A DNA stretch of 64,000 nucleotides, from positions 748,062 through 812,061 of the forward strand of contig NW_003314348.1 in NCBI RefSeq assembly GCF_000143415.4, read 5' to 3'. A program made the position numbers and the translations under genes. Source of the DNA: Selaginella moellendorffii. Taxonomy: Eukaryota; Plantae; Lycopodiophyta. This document shows positions 24,442 to 48,087 of the stretch, in pieces; within the stretch, counting starts at the first letter, position 1; each line of letters opens with the position of its first letter. The notes under the pieces are model-generated. The model was not told the DNA's origin, did not search any database, and was given only the letters and a program-made list of their open reading frames with translations.

Positions 24442-25860
24442 CTAGTCGCCCACCGCGGAGATTCTCGCCATTCGCTTTCTCCAGCGGACAATTATGAGCG
24501 CGATCAGCACCGACACGGCGATGATCACCGAGAAGGCGCCAATGGCTGTGTTGGCAACGATTCTCAGGGCCTTGGCGGATCGGCGCCCGGGAGGTAGGGC
24601 TCCGCCGGACGTTTTGATCTTGAGGAACATCGACGACGCATATCCTTGGCGCAGGGGCGTCACCGCGACGGTGTAGAGCGTAGTGACGTGGTAGCAGGCG
24701 CTGTCATGGATCCCAACCTGGAAGAACGCCGCAATGCAGCTACAATTCAAGAGGCAGGATTCCTTGCAAGCATTGGGAGAGAGCTGTGGAATCCCTTGCA
24801 TGAATTCCAGCGGCTGATAATCGTAGCCGGGGGCTTCGACGAGCTCGTGGCTGCCGCTGCTGTTGCATCGATCATCCGTCAACGACATTTCCCCCGGGAG
24901 AGAGCATCCTCCCAGCGGATTCGTCCGATCGATTGGCTCCAGCTGGAGCGATGGATCGAAGTCGAGGCAAGCACAGGTACTTTGTCGAAGCACGCCATAC
25001 TTTCCACATTCTCCAATGCCATTGATAGGAACGGGTTCGCTTTTCTTGTAGCTGTTCCAGAATCGCACAGTACCGTCATAGTGGAGCTTGAGGAACTTCC
25101 CAAACTGGAGGCAAAATGGCGCGGTGATTTTCTTGGTTGCTACCACGGACTCCATCCTGTTATATGCTACAAGATAGCAGCTCTCGATCATCAGGTACGC
25201 TATGTCGTGGCTTCCCAGGTCCCAGACCGCGTAAGTTTGCTCTGTGCCAGGAGCTCGAGCGCGGCCAACGAGACCCCGAGGCTGGAGCTCGAGAAAAAAG
25301 CTCCCTTGGCTCCTGTTTGTGTAAGAGACACTGGAGACGAGCTTGCTTCCCGGCACGAACTTTTGTTTCGGAAGCAACAAGTCCGTGGGGTGGTCGAAGC
25401 TCTGCCAGATGATCTCGCCCCCGCTGCCGAGGAGGACGAGGTTTCCGGTGTCGAGGACCTCCATAGCCACAACTCCTCGGCCCGAGGTGCCGGAGGACCA
25501 CACCTGGATGGGGCCTTGGCTCAGGACTAAGTTACCATCTTCTCCAAACGCGAGAGTGGCGTTGGCGGAGAGTGGGAAGTCTCGGTTGGCCTGCCAGACG
25601 CTGACGACGGTGTCCGACGAGATTGTGCACTCTACATCCGGGATGAGGGGGATGGAGATGGACAAGTAATAGATTGGAGAGGTGGAGCAAGCTCGCGTGA
25701 ATCCCAGCGCGTGGTTCGTGTCAACGTTGAGAAGCATGAAGTCCGGCTCAATACCTGACTCAAGCGTCCATTCTGTGTTGACAGGAGCCGTGCTTATAGC
25801 AGCAAAGACAGTGGTGCGATCAAGGAGAACGAGGAAGATCATTAAAGGCAGCACCACCAT
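24442..25860 (-). CDS. S-domain/EP1-like membrane protein: signal peptide, bulb-type lectin, PAN/apple, TM; no kinase
   Basis: VWQANRDFP, DGNLVL, LDTGNLVL, WQSFDHPTDLLLP.Q, CKESCLLNCSCIAAFF, C-terminal hydrophobic helix followed by RWRKR. Intronless. Confidence 0.88.
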   Translation of the reverse strand: MVVLPLMIFLVLLDRTTVFAAISTAPVNTEWTLESGIEPDFMLLNVDTNHALGFTRACSTSPIYYLSISIPLIPDVECTISSDTVVSVWQANRDFPLSANATLAFGEDGNLVLSQGPIQVWSSGTSGRGVVAMEVLDTGNLVLLGSGGEIIWQSFDHPTDLLLPKQKFVPGSKLVSSVSYTNRSQGSFFLELQPRGLVGRARAPGTEQTYAVWDLGSHDIAYLMIESCYLVAYNRMESVVATKKITAPFCLQFGKFLKLHYDGTVRFWNSYKKSEPVPINGIGECGKYGVLRQSTCACLDFDPSLQLEPIDRTNPLGGCSLPGEMSLTDDRCNSSGSHELVEAPGYDYQPLEFMQGIPQLSPNACKESCLLNCSCIAAFFQVGIHDSACYHVTTLYTVAVTPLRQGYASSMFLKIKTSGGALPPGRRSAKALRIVANTAIGAFSVIIAVSVLIALIIVRWRKRMARISAVGD

Positions 25861-27434: not shown

Positions 27435-29437
27435 TCAGCTTAGGGTGAAAGTGGCGTTCTTCATGCCCCATAGCGCGATGGAGGCGCCGATCGGGGCGCT
27501 GCCGTTGTTGAAGAGGAAGAGGCGCGGCGAGCCGCTGGTAGGGTACACGCGGGAGGTAATGCAGGTCCGTCCGCCTTGAAAGAATGTCTCGATGATCGAG
27601 TGATCTACCTGTGGAGCACGCAGTCAGTGAAATTCAGGCCTTTCTTTCGGGTCTTACAATCACTCGCATCGTGAGCTGCTGCTCTGTGCTGGTAACGTTC
27701 ACGAATCCTCCGTATGCTGTTTTTGTGACATTTGGCTGTAGCGACGATCTAGAGGAAATGTTTTGGTTTGATCTCTGGGAATTTGGGGATGGATTACCTT
27801 CGAATGTCGCTGCAAGCAAGGGGCTTCCAGCCCGACTTCGATCTCAGCAACGCGAAGTAGATCGCAGTGTGTTCTTGGAGATAATCCGAGGCTAGAACCA
27901 TTAGTCCAAATGGTCCAATTGCTTCTCTTGATGCGGTGGTACGACCAAGGCATGAGGTTTGTCCGTCTTCCATGATGCTGTCGAGGGTGACTAGTTTGTG
28001 ATTTCTTACAGTGAAGGTGACCTCGATGTCCAGCTAAAACAACGCACGAGAAGCTGAAAGAAATGAAGAGAAAACAGGAGGAACACTAAAAGGTTGAGCC
28101 TAGGAACCTGAAACTTCTTTCTGCCGCTATGTATCTCCTGCAACGCGCCACCTTGAAGCTTGCGGTAAGCCTGTGAATGGTAGTCCCGTCGACGCAGTTT
28201 ATACACTTCGGCTAGTGGCCACTGTCTAACTCCATTTTGGTGTGTTTCATCCAGCCAGATTTGTCTCGGGAGTGCCTGACACAACTTCAGATCAACAAGA
28301 GGTTCTCACAAACAGTTTCTTCCACATACCTGGACGCCGGCCCAGCCTTTGGCTATGTCAGCCTCAACGCTGTCTTTCTCGGTGACCCATCCCCAAAGTA
28401 CGCGTCTCTGCTTCTCAGGGTCGTAGAACGTCTTGGAAGCGTAGAAGACGCCGTAATCGTAAACGAGGCCTATTCCAGTGTCCAGCTCCGGGACATTGGG
28501 TATGAACTTATCGGCCGCAGCATCGTAAGTTCCTACAGCGTAAGCATCTTGTCTGGTATTATCCAAGCTGACTTTGAGTACGTGTTTAACTCCAGAGCCT
28601 CTGACTGAATCCTCCAAGCCTTTTGTTCCGAAGGATGAAACGGGATAGAAATCCGGGCACTCCCACATCCCGGTTCCAGCAACTTCATGGAGCGGATTGT
28701 CCACCAAGTCCCAGTGAACAAAGTCTTTACTGGTGTACAGGATTGCAGCTCCGGTGGCATTCTTCTTTGCTCCCACCAGGATTCTCCAAAGCCCGTCGGC
28801 ACCAATCCAGGCCGTGGTTGGATCTCTGAAGTCTACTGTTCGCACGCCGGAGGGTGGTGGAAAGATGATCGGGTTCCGCTCCAGTTTCTTCCAGGTTCTA
28901 ACCAGCGGATCCGAGATGTTTGCAGGCACAGCCTCGTTCTGCGACTGATCTAAGTTGAGCGCAGAGCCCGTGTAGAGAATGACCGGCACTCCCTTGACGA
29001 AGGTGATGGAGCCAGAGAAGGCACCGTTTTGGTCGTAAGGCTTGTCTCTTTGGAGAGCCAGGTCGAGGAAGCTCCAGTTGATGAGGTCCTTGGAGACTGC
29101 GTGTCCCCAGCTGATGTTTCCAAATACTGGCGCGGTGGGATTGTACTGGAAGAAGAGGTGATACAATCCTTTGTAGAGCATCGGTCCTGGCTTAAGTCCA
29201 TGAGGTAACGATCTTTTCTTTCTATCATTTTCTTACCATTGGGATCTTTTGGGACAGGAAAGAGGAAGAAGAACATACACATACAAGGGTGGCTTTTACT
29301 TGAGTGACTCTAGAAGTTATAATTTTACCATTCATCCAGTTCTTGATGGGTTGGAAGTGGAATGCAGGGCGTAAGTCATCCCCCACAGACGATCCTGCAA
29401 GCGATAAGATGATTATTATCAGAAGCATAGCCGGCAT
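27435..29437 (-). CDS. GH32 acid (cell-wall-type) invertase/beta-fructofuranosidase with a 9-nt mini-exon
   Basis: Signal peptide, [16 protein letters not shown] (mini-exon 29237-29245), [43 protein letters not shown]. Confidence 0.93.
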
Positions 29438-29499
29438 TTGAAAGGCAAGGTTGGTGCAACCATCTTTTTTAGCTTAATCGGGTAAATCAAATTCGGGAG

Positions 29500-29509
29500 A
29501 AAAATAAAA
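29500..29509 (-). terminator. Putative Pol III oligo-T terminator of tRNA-Pro
   Basis: TTTTATTTTT on the minus strand, about 20 nt after the discriminator base. Confidence 0.55.
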
Positions 29510-29529
29510 GCTGGACATCTTTTTCTTCG

Positions 29530-29603
29530 TAGGGATGACAGGATTCGAACCTGCGGCCGTTTGTACCCAAAACAAACGCGCTACCGAGCTGCGCTACATC
29601 CCT
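29530..29603 (-). tRNA. trnP-UGG: tRNA-Pro(UGG), chloroplast-type sequence in nuclear context
   Basis: AGGGATG TA GCGC AGCTCGGTA GCGC G TTTGT TT-TGG-GT ACAAA CGGCC GCAGG TTCGAAT CCTGT CATCCCT A (74 nt) folds as a complete cloverleaf. It closely matches plastid trnP-UGG as I recall it and not plant cytosolic tRNA-Pro (GGGCGTTTGGTCTAG...). Confidence 0.92.
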
Positions 29604-30199
29604 GGCCGCAATTTCCAGTGCCGGAATGCTGCCCCAGGCGAACTTGCATGTTAGCAAAACAGTTTTGAAACTCTTGACAGGTTCTTTCCGGCTCTTTGTC
29701 AAGCAGCTTTCAAATCCTTCGAAAAAGATAGGGAAAGTGAAAGTAAAATAAAATAGAATATTTACTTATGGTCATGGCCCATAAAACTTAATATTCATTA
29801 GTCTAAGTATTTGTTTTGGAGTGTTACCTCAAGGATTTGGAAATGTTGTGTGCTGTGCTTGTGTTGTTGCTGATTTCAAGGACGAAGGCTGCCACCTCTC
29901 TGGCCACGGGCAGGGCATAAACTTCACCGACAGTAGCCAAATTTCCACTGGTAAGAAAATTGTTACGGTCTTTCAAATGACATGTTAGGGTTTTAAATAT
30001 ATCATCTATTATTTAATGATATCCTATCCTAAATTTCTGCTTATACTTTTAGCAAGATTGTGGTGGAAAATGCTACCGAACTCTTGCTTGAGCAGTTGGA
30101 TTCATGCTGGGGCACCGAATAGTGGATTGAATTTAAAAGGTAAAAAAGCTAAAATGAAATGCTTGAAACACTAAAAGATAAGGAGATTTAGGAGAGTAA

Positions 30200-31840
30200 T
30201 TAAACATGAGCCCTGTGGCAGAAGGTATAATTAGTACCATCTAATGTGAAGGAATGCAGGGCAATTGTCATGTTCAACAGTCTCCATTTTCCTCGTAGTA
30301 GACTTGGCAAAGTCTGTCCTCCAAAGGAGTAAGTGGTTTGAGCCATTCTCCAACTGTTGAATATAGGTGGTGTCCTCCTGCTTGATAGGTAGTTAGGATC
30401 CTTTGAGTGCTTTTGTCCTAAAGGCCAGTGTAGCTGGATGACAATTTCCCGTGTTGTGTTACTGTTTGTAGGTACTATTGGAAGGCAGTACTGGTTGGCT
30501 GTTTGAAAAGTGAATTCCATCCATTCTGCAGACACTTCGGTAATGTGTGAGGAGTAGATAATTGAGATCCATTCCTAGATCATGTTGTTCACGCAAACAT
30601 GATGTTTTTCCTAAACCCATTTATAAATCCTTGCTGTTTAGATCCAATTTTCTTGGAAGATCATATACCCCAGAGACTTATACCTCATTCCTTTATCTGT
30701 GTTAGAGATAATCTCTTGTATCCAATCTGTCTTGTGAGGTTGACCACCAACCCTCTAGAATCTCAAGTTGTCTTTGAAACAAAGAGCAAGTGGATGTGAG
30801 GGGTAAGAGATCATTCACATACAGAAAGTATTGATATAGGCTAGCCATTTGTATCACTGAAAGATGGTGGTCAGTGAATAATGTTTCAATACATGCTGTG
30901 TGGTACTTCGCAAGTGGAGAGGAGTTCAACGGAGCGGGTCCGGAGGGGGCGATGGGAGAGAGGACTTTGGAAAGCGATGGGAACGAGCTATGGGACAAAA
31001 TCAGTCCATTAATATATAGTCTCAGAAGAGTTGGCGAAAGTAGACAAACTTGCTTAACTCTTATGGTGATCAGAATAAGTTCTTATCCAGCAAATGACTT
31101 CATAAAGTGCCAAAAGTGCCTGGATTATACTTAATGGTGTCTCTATAACCTTCAAGTGATCCTGTAAACTTTGTCTAATCGCTAAACAATCATAGGTGTA
31201 TTTAGGCCTGAAACCCGCTTGATTTTTCAACAATACGGGCAAATATTTAAAACCACTATGGTGTGGTGGTTTTTAGGAAGCATCTCATCACCACTTTTAT
31301 AGATTGGAATGATGCAGTTTACTGTCCACTTTTTTGGGAAGCCATTGCAGAGAACATCACCTAAGATTTGAGCAAGTATCGTTGCTAGGAGGTGTTGATC
31401 ACAAGCTTGAAGTAATTCCATATCAACAGCCTTCCAAAATATGCTATATGCTTTGTTTGGGGTTGCCATACATTCTCGTTTTTTACGCTTGCATATTGGT
31501 GAGCTGCTTTGGCATCGGGTGCTTCAGATTGGGCCCTTTGCCTTTTGAATTGTATTCCATTGCTGGCGTTCATTATTCCACCATGGGGAGTTGGGGATGC
31601 GGAATGGGGAATGAGCTGCTGTGGTGAGGACTTTTATCAAGAGATCAGCATAGTTGTCAATTGGTACCATAAGTCCCTCAATTGTTCTGCATAGAGACTT
31701 CGCCGTTCTGCAATGATCTTGTATCTGATAGATGTGGGGAGCTGTTCATGAGCTGTAGTAGCTGGAGGAATTGTCGACGTCAATCCCAGAGGGCAGTGAT
31801 CCGCAATCTCCAGATCCACTTGGATTGATTGAAGATCCAC
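30200..31840 (-). mobile_element. Degenerate non-LTR (LINE) retrotransposon reverse-transcriptase remnant
   Basis: Frame-broken pieces FPKKWTVNCIIPIYKSGD..PKNHHTI, NQAGFRPKY, FLYVNDLL match LINE RT motifs. Boundaries are approximate. Confidence 0.7.
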
Positions 31841-32312
31841 TTTGTTTGAGGAGATTGTAGCCTAGTAATAGTGCCTAGTACCACGACTAGTGCGGCAAGT
31901 GAAACCCCCTGGGTGAGGCCAGTGCCGTGTTCCATTTAGAATACTGTGGTGCAGGTATCGAGTAATTGTTTCCCTGCGGTCTTGGTCGTGTCATCCTGGG
32001 CAATTGTGGTAACAAAAGAGTTCTTCATTGTAGAGAGTGGCTTGCAAGGATGCAGTAAGTACGAGATGCAGTAGATAACGACACCGGAGGAGGATTCTTC
32101 AGAAAGGCCATATCCTTTTTTCAGTATTTGTTTCTTTCTTTTCTTCGGGTTTTTTTCTTTTAAAATTTCTGATGGGCGACTCTATCACTCTAGATGGAGT
32201 CCACTCAATGCAAGTTGGGAGTAAAGTCTCGCCTATCAATTTAGCATTAGTTCATCTTCCATAGCCACACGGCTGGCCCTTCCCTGGCCACACATTTTAC
32301 CATTGCGGAGAA

Positions 32313-32315
<3 letters not shown>

Positions 32316-32355
<40 letters not shown>
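32316..32355. repeat. (GA)n microsatellite in the COI1-like 5' region
   Basis: Perfect GA run. Confidence 0.95.
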
Positions 32356-32359
<4 letters not shown>

Positions 32360-32434
32360 AGTAAAAAACAGAGAGAGAGAGGATCTTACGTACCACGACA
32401 TCTTCTCCTTCCTTCCCGGTTAGAAGTGTTAGCG

Positions 32435-34502
32435 ATGGAGGAGCGAAGCAGTAACAAGAAGAAGAAGAAGAGCGCAGTGCTGTGGCTGTGCGATGAGCTG
32501 CTGGAGAGAATCCTCGCGCTTATCGCCGATCCCTGCGACCGCGCGGCGGTCTCCGAGGTGAATCGGCAGTGGTACCGGGTGGAGGCGAGGACGCGATCGA
32601 GATTGGTGGTCAAGTGCTCGTACGCAGTGCATCCATGGCGGCTGGCCCAGCGATTTACCGGCCTCGCCAGCGTGACCATCAAGGGGCGGCCACGGATCTA
32701 CGACTGGGGCTTGCTCGGGGACGACTGGGGCGGCACCGCCGACGCCTGGATCCGCGTCCTCGTCGCCTGCTGCCCCTCTCTCGCCGCCATCCACCTCCGC
32801 CGCTTCGACGTCCCCGACTCCGCCATCGCCGCCATTGCCACCGCCGCGTTTGCGAGCTCGCTGCAGGTGCTCAAGCTCGACCGCTGCTCGGGCTTCTCCA
32901 CCCGGGGCCTCCTCGAGATCGCGCGCCACTGCAAGTGAGTCAAGCAAGCGATCATCTCTCTCTCAACGTTGTGTTCTATCTATATGATCCAGGAACCTCA
33001 GAGTTTTGAGCTTGGACGAGAGCATCGTGGATGGTGGCGGCGAGCAGTGGCTGCGAGCTCTGGCCGACACCGCCACCAAGCTCGAGGTGCTCAGCTTTAG
33101 CCTGACGGGGATCGAGGTCCGGGGCCTGGACGATGTGGCGGCGATTGTGAGCAGGAACAAGCGACTCGCCTCTCTTCGGCTTGACGAAGTTCGCACCACC
33201 AATGACGCCATTTCCAGGGCGCGGGGGATCCTTTGCGATGCTGCATCGCTCCAGGAGATGCTGCTGCTCTATCGCTCCCTGGATGAGAGCAGCATCATCG
33301 AGAAGCTGGAGCTGCCCAAGACGGTCACTTCCCTCGCCGGGGATATCAGCATTCCTCTCGATTCCGGGCTCGCCTTCCGGCTGCTCAAGCTCGACTTGAT
33401 GCTCACCACCCTCGATAGCTCGCAGCTCTCGCTTCTCCACCAGACTTTCCAAGCGTGTCCCAACCTGGAAGAACTCAAGGTAATGAGACTTTCCGTAGCT
33501 TGGATCTTACTCTCTTCTTTCGCTCACTATCTCTCAGAGTTTGAACAAACCAGCCATTTGCTTTCTAAGTTCTTCCAATGTTTTCCAAAGTTCTCATCCA
33601 GTCACTAGCTAGCGCAAGTTGTTATCTCTCGACAGACACATTCCTTAGCTTGGACACCATCAACAGATCATGAAGTTCTTTTCGAAAGTTCACCCTCCCC
33701 CGATCCTTCTATAGATCCATCGAAAGTTCTCAATCGACTGAAGAGTACATTGCTCCTTTCCCAGGTGAGGAACAGCATCGGGGACGAGGGAGTCGAGGCC
33801 ATCGCTAAGCACTGTCGGAAGCTCAAGCGCATCCGAATCGAGAACCTCGAGGACAACCATCACTCAGTCTCGCAGCACGGCCTCATCGCGCTCGCCTCCA
33901 GCTGCGCACACCTCCGCACAGTAGCCATCTACGCCTCAGACGTGAGCAACGCAGCATTTGCCGCTTTTGGCATTTGCTGCCGGGACCTCTACGACTTCCG
34001 GATCGCGGTGCTCGACTCCCCGACCCCGCTCACCGATACCCCGCTCGACGCCGGCGTCAAATCCCTCCTCCAGGGCTGCCGGGGCCTCCGCAAGCTCGCG
34101 CTCTACCTCAAGCGCGGCGGCCTCTCGGATCACGGCCTGGCAGAGATGGGGGTGCTCGCGGCCAATCTCAAGTGGCTGCTCCTGGGCTGCGCGGGCTACT
34201 CGGACGCCGGATTCGTGGGCCTCGCGGCCGGGTGCGCGAGGCTGACCAAGCTGGAGCTCCGGCACTGCCCGTTTAGCGAGGCCGGCATGGCGGCCGGGGT
34301 GGCGCGGATGGAGCGGCTGAGGTACGTGTGGAGCCAGGGGTACCGCGAAGTGGACGCCAGAGATTTACTGGCGCTGGGGCCGGCGTGGAACATCGAGTAC
34401 ATGCCGTCCCGCGATGCCGCTGTGACACAGTTCGTAGCATATCGGTCGCTGCTTGGGCCCCGGAGGGATTGCCCGCCTCGCGTCATGCAACTGGTTGGCT
34501 AA
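32435..34502 (+). CDS. COI1: COI1-like F-box/LRR jasmonate receptor homolog (exons 32435-32934, 32993-33479, 33765-34502; 574 aa)
   Basis: F-box; KGRPR; DWGG; LKLDRCSGFSTRGL; KLKRIRIE; VAIYASDV.N; DFRI; PLDAGV.SLL.GC..LRKLALYLKRGGLSD.GL; KLELRHC.FSE; WSQGY; WNIEY; SL.G.R.DCP. Conserved COI1/TIR1 three-exon layout. Confidence 0.88.
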
Positions 34503-47560: not shown

Positions 47561-48016
47561 CAGAAGTTGTTACAAGACATTCTTTTGACAATCTTAATTA
47601 GGCTTTGCAATTTAGATGAGCCTTCTGCTAATCTTGTGTATGAACTTGGTGTATATTAATACCATGCTTACAAAGTGAAATGATATAGTTTGCATCAGAA
47701 ATGCCAGTAATAACAACATTAGAAACCAATCTATGTTTGAGTTTTAGAATATTAGTTGGGATTCAGTGATGAAACCTCCAAGGTTCCTCGAAGATCCTTT
47801 AGACAGTGTAGTACTCGTTTCTTTAGGATACAGGTTTAATGCCGGGTCTTTCATAGCAGCTAAGATATTTGCTTATCTTTTGTTTTCTTATTCTCGCAAT
47901 GCTGGCCAAAGAGAAGATCCCCACCTCATGCTCCTCGTAAAAAGAAGTTCAAAGATTCTCTTCCCAGGCCAAAAGCTTGGTCAAAAAGTTAAAAAGAGGA
48001 CAAAACAAACTAAAAG

Positions 48017-48087
48017 TGCACTGCCCGGGAATCGAACCCGGGTCTGTACCGTGGCAGGGTACTATTCTACCACTAGACCAGCAGTGC
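48017..48087 (-). tRNA. tRNA-Gly(GCC), cytosolic type
   Basis: GCACTGC TGGTCTAGTGGTAGAATAGTACCCT-GCC-ACGGTACAGACCCGGGTTCGATTCCCGG GCAGTGC A (71 nt), followed by TTTT. Confidence 0.95.

Follow-up and report, generated by a model that had tools for sequence, protein, structure and literature searches.

A plastid-type tRNA-Pro(UGG) gene in the nuclear genome of Selaginella moellendorffii, probably orthologous to a plastid-like tRNA-Pro gene of S. kraussiana

Plastids were for a long time believed not to pass an RNA gene to the nucleus in functional form and to take the RNA back by import. [quoted passage not shown] 2024, PNAS, PMC11573648). These genes stem from a plastid trnP-UGG that moved to the nucleus, was lost from the plastome and was triplicated, and a phylogeny groups them with plastid trnP (PMC11573648). 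In S. kraussiana every plike tRNA-Pro is expressed, and plastid enrichment is seen for the plike species only; besides a T stretch the genes have A and B boxes, and a CAA is found upstream of two of the three (PMC11573648). Every known plastome encodes trnP-UGG, with Selaginella species as the exception, and Selaginella mitochondria encode no tRNAs (PMC11573648); the plastome of Isoetes retains trnP-UGG. The nearest parallel outside the genus is offered by the cytosolic tRNAs imported into plant mitochondria, for which a nucleus-encoded tRNA likewise compensates for a lost organellar gene. Those tRNAs are of eukaryotic origin, whereas plike tRNA-Pro has an organellar ancestry and is imported back, and the import target shown in the sister species S. 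kraussiana is the plastid rather than the mitochondrion. S. moellendorffii is unmentioned in the main text of PMC11573648, and we found no later literature describing plike tRNA-Pro genes in this species, whose tRNA genes are annotated in PlantRNA 2.0.

We analysed a 64,000-nt stretch of S. moellendorffii DNA, here called the window, in which an initial annotation had described an intact 74-nt cloverleaf with plastid trnP identity, including A1-U72 and A73, and had named no strand. ARAGORN called a minus-strand tRNA-Pro(tgg) at 29529-29603, Rfam RF00005 matched 29530-29603 with 67.3 bits (E 1.7e-12; gathering score 29), and 21 of 21 cloverleaf pairs are of standard type, so that this description was confirmed. 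Read on the minus strand, the gene begins with AGGGATGTAGCGCAGC and ends with CATCCCTA, which gives the A1-U72 pair and discriminator A73 as annotated. The gene and its anticodon are placed as follows.

29530-29603, minus strand: tRNA-Pro(UGG) gene, 74 nt, plastid type (A1-U72, A73), from ARAGORN, Rfam RF00005 and the cloverleaf check
29567-29569, minus strand: anticodon UGG of the tRNA-Pro (sequential positions 35-37), from ARAGORN and the sequence

CCA is not encoded in the gene, because the next base after it is C. When evaluated directly, the cloverleaf has an energy of -22.0 kcal/mol; minimum-free-energy folding returned a non-cloverleaf fold (z -1.77), a result that is usual for tRNAs and hence uninformative. 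A single occurrence of the gene’s 3’ part was found in the window, against 0 expected by chance.

Metagenome and prokaryote-genome collections were scanned for the 25-nt 5’ core of the gene, and at least 228 tRNA-Pro genes were extracted; ancestry was judged against four plastid copies and the bacterial-type tRNA-Pro copies among the matches listed. As the 25-nt core is common in bacteria, it is no mark of a plastid on its own. The best matches among those listed were the plastid trnP-UGG copies in contigs L014, L086, L033 and L081, to which the gene is identical at 65-68 of 74 positions (88-92%). Three of these four copies have trnW-CCA 135-180 nt downstream of trnP, and L086 also has rps18, rpl33, psaJ, petG, petL and psbE, plastid gene neighbours that identify it as a fragment of a seed-plant plastome. 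Two features separate the plastid copies from the others: a starting A with an ending U72-A73, and the anticodon arm TTTGT / UGG loop / ACAAA, each seen only in the same four copies among the matches listed (n=228). Since the best matches, A1-U72 and the anticodon arm all point to the plastid copies, the plastid origin proposed by the initial annotation is supported by the comparison.

An origin from a bacterial or mitochondrial gene would explain why the 25-nt core and the 3’ part (GCAGG TTCGAAT CCTGT CATCCC) are widespread in bacteria, and why the best bacterial copy among the matches listed still reaches 64/74. That copy, however, has C1-G72, as do all of the at least 220 bacterial-type copies listed; none of about 220 bacterial relatives among the matches listed combines A1-U72 with the anticodon arm, and the S. 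kraussiana genes are placed with plastid trnP (PMC11573648). We regard such an origin as extremely improbable.

The surroundings of the gene are those of a nuclear chromosome. When the whole window was compared with the four plastid contigs by blastn and tblastx, the match was confined to 29529-29604, and ARAGORN found no trnW in the window; its two tRNA genes there are tRNA-Pro(tgg) and tRNA-Gly(gcc), both on the minus strand. Because plastid similarity ends at 29529-29604 and trnW is missing, the tRNA-Pro(UGG) gene is not a recent NUPT, which agrees with what had been annotated. It shares with ordinary NUPTs that carry tRNA genes (PlantRNA 2.0) the presence of plastid-derived DNA in a nuclear chromosome. 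Ordinary NUPTs, in contrast, are usually still flanked by colinear plastid DNA and are considered not to be expressed, whereas in the window nothing but the gene remains, and loss of the plastome copy has been reported for Selaginella (PMC11573648). The neighbouring genes used as landmarks are these.

28306-29181, minus strand: open reading frame of exon 3 of a GH32 gene (Pfam Glyco_hydro_32N, 3e-82)
29187-29236, minus strand: GH32 intron, read from the sequence
29237-29245, minus strand: 9-nt GH32 mini-exon, DPN of the NDPNG motif, read from the sequence
29246-29328, minus strand: GH32 intron, read from the sequence
29329-29437, minus strand: first coding exon of the GH32 (invertase-type) gene, ATG at 29437, read from the sequence
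32303-34502, plus strand: TIR1/AFB-like auxin-receptor F-box gene over several open reading frames, from its domains (F-box_5, Transp_inhibit, LRR)
48017-48087 (ARAGORN 48016-48087), minus strand: eukaryote-type tRNA-Gly(GCC), 18 kb away (Rfam 58.8 bits)

Intron-containing nuclear genes thus lie within 100 nt of the tRNA-Pro(UGG) gene on one side and 2.7 kb away on the other; the GH32 ATG, on the strand of the tRNA, follows its 3’ end after 93 nt. With a GH32 gene that has spliceosomal introns, the F-box gene and, 18 kb away, a eukaryote-type tRNA-Gly as neighbours, the nuclear location assumed at the outset is supported: the gene sits in the nuclear genome. Misassembly of organelle DNA into a nuclear scaffold has in its favour the plastid-like sequence itself and nothing more. 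Set against it are the intron-containing genes at these distances, a plastid similarity of 75 nt only, and independent sequencing runs (X25 and X28, below) that join the tRNA to the window’s own flanks; its probability is practically negligible.

A few further observations concern the neighbours themselves. Plant acid invertase genes characteristically have a 9-nt mini-exon between introns, and this plant-type mini-exon is present here in a lycophyte. Homologues of the protein encoded by the neighbouring GH32 exon are at best 55-60% identical and come from many plants, with no close orthologue among them for a synteny test. The sequence of the tRNA-Gly(GCC) gene is presumably of the usual plant nuclear type; it has TTTT two bases past its 3’ end and, like tRNA-Pro(UGG), no obvious upstream TATA box, and should be useful as an internal Pol III reference for this genome. 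The window also holds, at 24442-25860 on the minus strand, a 472-aa single-exon B-lectin (EP1-like glycoprotein) gene. Among the named relatives the closest, at 57%, is an S. moellendorffii paralogue; angiosperm proteins come next, at about 30%.

We then asked what distinguishes the nuclear copy from plastid trnP-UGG of land plants. Both share A1-U72, A73, the D stem, the anticodon arm and the acceptor stem; the window gene differs in being nuclear, in having no trnW, psaJ or petG neighbours, and at seven sequential positions when the plastid copy in L086/L033 is taken as reference.

Position 18, D loop: plastid T, window C
Positions 45, 46 and 48, variable loop: plastid ATGTC, window CGGCC
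Positions 50 and 52, T stem 5’ side: plastid ACGGG, window GCAGG
Position 58, T loop: plastid TTCAAAT, window TTCGAAT

The window’s T stem, GCAGG/CCTGT, occurs in 14 of 14 Cyanobacteriota tRNA-Pro(UGG) genes among the matches listed; because all 14 share this state, the two T-stem differences are taken to be ancestral and to have been changed later in seed-plant plastids. We accordingly rejected the idea that they arose as compensatory changes after transfer. Plastid T loops do read TTCAAAT, as had been noted, in all four plastid copies compared. The T-loop G (G57), by comparison, is found in 6 of the 14 Cyanobacteriota genes among the matches listed, and the bacterial-type copies listed include at least 117 with TTCGAAT and at least 102 with TTCAAAT. 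With the G present in 6/14 Cyanobacteriota and in about half of the bacterial relatives, its reading as an adaptation to Pol III was likewise rejected. The remaining four changes are derived, all of them AT to GC and all in loops. Selaginella plastomes have a GC content of 51-55%, and the four changes fit either a GC-rich Selaginella plastome before transfer or later drift. The differences do keep the stems paired, as the initial annotation said (21/21 pairs), but they are no sign of adaptation after transfer, since the T-stem states are ancestral (14/14).

How much constraint this pattern implies bears on a further alternative, in which the gene is the inert remnant of an old NUPT, intact by chance, with no useful transcription and no role. 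When seven random substitutions were simulated, all 21 pairs were kept in 1.3% of trials, and when the universal bases and anticodon of tRNA-Pro(UGG) also had to be spared, in 0.1%. These low frequencies speak against chance survival, as does the contrast between flanks without any plastid similarity and 74 nt that keep 88-92% identity and 21/21 pairs. In favour of an inert remnant, two of the seven differences are ancestral and four are loop changes, such that the intactness needs little constraint after transfer. As part of the divergence arose under constraint in plastids, the simulation is only modest evidence of nuclear constraint.

The gene and its trailer contain the following candidate signals for transcription by Pol III.

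29584-29596, minus strand: A-box-like TAGCGCAGCTCGG, tRNA positions 8-19, a candidate internal promoter element, read from the sequence
29541-29551, minus strand: B-box-like GGTTCGAATCC, in the T arm, read from the sequence
29506-29509, minus strand: T4 run at +21 to +24 from the tRNA, a candidate Pol III terminator, read from the sequence
29500-29504, minus strand: T5 run at +26 to +30 from the tRNA, a candidate Pol III terminator, read from the sequence

The A-box-like sequence and the oligo-T that had been annotated are thus both in place, at 29584-29596 and 29500-29509. The role given to the A box follows the established layout of Pol III type-2 promoters, and bacterial-type tRNAs have A and B boxes within the conserved D and T arms. 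The supposedly perfect B-box is present at 29541-29551, but it loses its value as a sign of adaptation, G57 being common in bacteria; GGTTCGAATCC is compatible with Pol III use and is no proof of adaptation. The T runs 3’ of the gene would act as terminators, to judge from their sequence and position, the first of them at +21 lying farther out than that of the tRNA-Gly neighbour (+2). On reading the upstream sequence we found no TATA-like element, and no CAA lies at -1 to -10, the nearest being at -41 to -43. The lack of a canonical upstream TATA or CAA would also suit an inert remnant. In having no CAA within -10, the window gene is like one of the three published S. kraussiana genes.

Weak upstream Pol III motifs are also what one would expect if the tRNA, with or without a Pol III promoter of its own, were released by RNase P and RNase Z cleavage of a Pol II transcript that begins upstream and reads through into the GH32 mRNA. 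The tRNA and GH32 are read in the same direction, with 93 nt between the tRNA and the GH32 ATG, and contigs from RNA-like runs reach 34-43 nt upstream of the tRNA and continue downstream. Against such a co-transcript stand the internal A and B boxes and the T runs. Moreover, the contigs cannot show strand or transcript ends, and the one that appears spliced is not GH32 mRNA, since its GT..AG is on the plus strand and the introns of GH32 are still in it. Release of the tRNA from a GH32 transcript is therefore very improbable. As a side possibility, the position 93 nt upstream of the invertase gene might couple the output of the tRNA to a Pol II transcript.

The contigs just mentioned come from sequencing runs. 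Sampled words of the tRNA-Pro(UGG) gene occur in many runs, of organism A and of the differently labelled organisms B, H and I; four runs were aligned to window positions 28800-30400, all as assembled contigs, and none of the runs with these words is recorded as RNA. A contig of 1107 nt from X25 (organism A) aligns colinearly to 28800-29202 and 29256-29637 and links the tRNA with the nuclear DNA around it. Missing from this contig are 53 nt (29205-29257) bounded by GT..AG on the plus strand, and both GH32 introns are retained; it looks like either a spliced antisense RNA that spans the tRNA and the 5’ exons of GH32 or an allele with 53 bp deleted. Because of the plus-strand GT..AG and the retained introns, this contig is evidence neither of GH32 mRNA nor of tRNA expression. 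A 53-bp deletion allele, if the gap is one, would remove the GH32 mini-exon. A contig of low depth (2.4) in X28 joins 29479 to 29531 and skips 51 nt, which include the trailer with both T runs; this gap has non-canonical GG..GT ends and the contig then continues into sequence unlike the window, and it may be a second haplotype or an assembly artefact.

Related copies of the tRNA were also seen. A second X25 contig carries the tRNA with seven differences, one of which changes the wobble base from T to A (plus-strand 29569); given this wobble change, it represents a paralogue with the anticodon AGG. Beyond the window locus and this one paralogue, the organism A runs contained no further contig at least 90% identical to the tRNA, which weakly favours the loss of trnP from the plastome of this species. 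Contigs of X30 (organism H) and X31 (organism I) carry the tRNA with 0-1 differences followed by unrelated flanks. A 658-nt contig of X31 (depth 886), matched at window positions 29524-29604, holds two plastid-type tRNA-Pro copies in tandem, 57 nt apart, with 1 and 7 differences from the window gene; they are probably an AGG/CGG-type pair and are strongly represented in the run. In three of the four foreign trailers (X30/X31) a T4-T5 run lies within 7-11 nt, and one upstream flank among the X30/X31 contigs has a TATA-like ATATAAAAA. Going by the different organism labels only, these copies would be conserved across species.

No CCA end was seen on tRNA-Pro among the contigs over the four runs, which carry genomic flanks. 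The lack of a CCA-ended mature tRNA among them is the last of the points that favour an inert remnant. Two more weigh against it: copies with 0-1 differences and unrelated flanks are present in runs labelled as other organisms, and the gene family is demonstrably functional in S. kraussiana (PMC11573648). Taking these with the flanks and the simulation, we consider an inert remnant improbable.

Placed beside the S. kraussiana plike genes, the window gene is alike in being nuclear, in its trnP-UGG ancestry, in belonging to the same genus, in its A and B boxes and its downstream T stretch, and, it seems, in having a paralogue with a changed anticodon, the AGG-type copy in organism A run X25. It differs in the species, S. 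moellendorffii, and is probably the orthologue there of an S. kraussiana plike gene.

The explanation that we favour, and consider likely, is that this is a nuclear plike tRNA-Pro(UGG) gene that arose by plastid-to-nucleus transfer and whose product is transcribed by Pol III, processed and imported into the plastid. On this account, plastid trnP-UGG would have been copied to the nucleus long ago, and the plastid flanks would have gone, leaving the 74-nt gene alone. Its internal A and B boxes would direct transcription by Pol III, which would stop at the T runs 21-30 nt downstream; the transcript ends would be processed and CCA added. The tRNA would then be imported into a chloroplast that would have no trnP in its genome, and might possibly be used in the cytosol and in the tRNA-less mitochondria as well. 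The account starts from what we observed directly at this locus (an intact gene, its plastid ancestry, a nuclear context, no plastid flanks, and near-identical copies elsewhere with unrelated flanks), while transcription, processing and import would follow by analogy with S. kraussiana. Functional transfer with re-import had already been suggested for this gene; of the reasons then given, the plastid ancestry, the nuclear location and the missing plastid flanks stand, whereas the arguments from stem and B-box adaptation fall away. By that analogy, transfer and re-import are plausible for the tRNA-Pro(UGG) gene.

It is doubtful, by comparison, that the UGG copy is a conserved founder of the plike family across Selaginella that serves cytosol, plastid and mitochondrion at once. 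If that were true, all the translation systems of the cell would draw on one prokaryote-type tRNA that an organellar-type ProRS charges.

The idea of transfer and re-import is already published for the genus (PMC11573648), and the window gene is a further example of it rather than a discovery; it adds no new principle. A UGG member in a second Selaginella species suggests, in turn, that the transfer predates the split of the two species. Finally, S. moellendorffii is a genome-model species with better genetic resources, in which import determinants and recognition by the synthetase may be tested.
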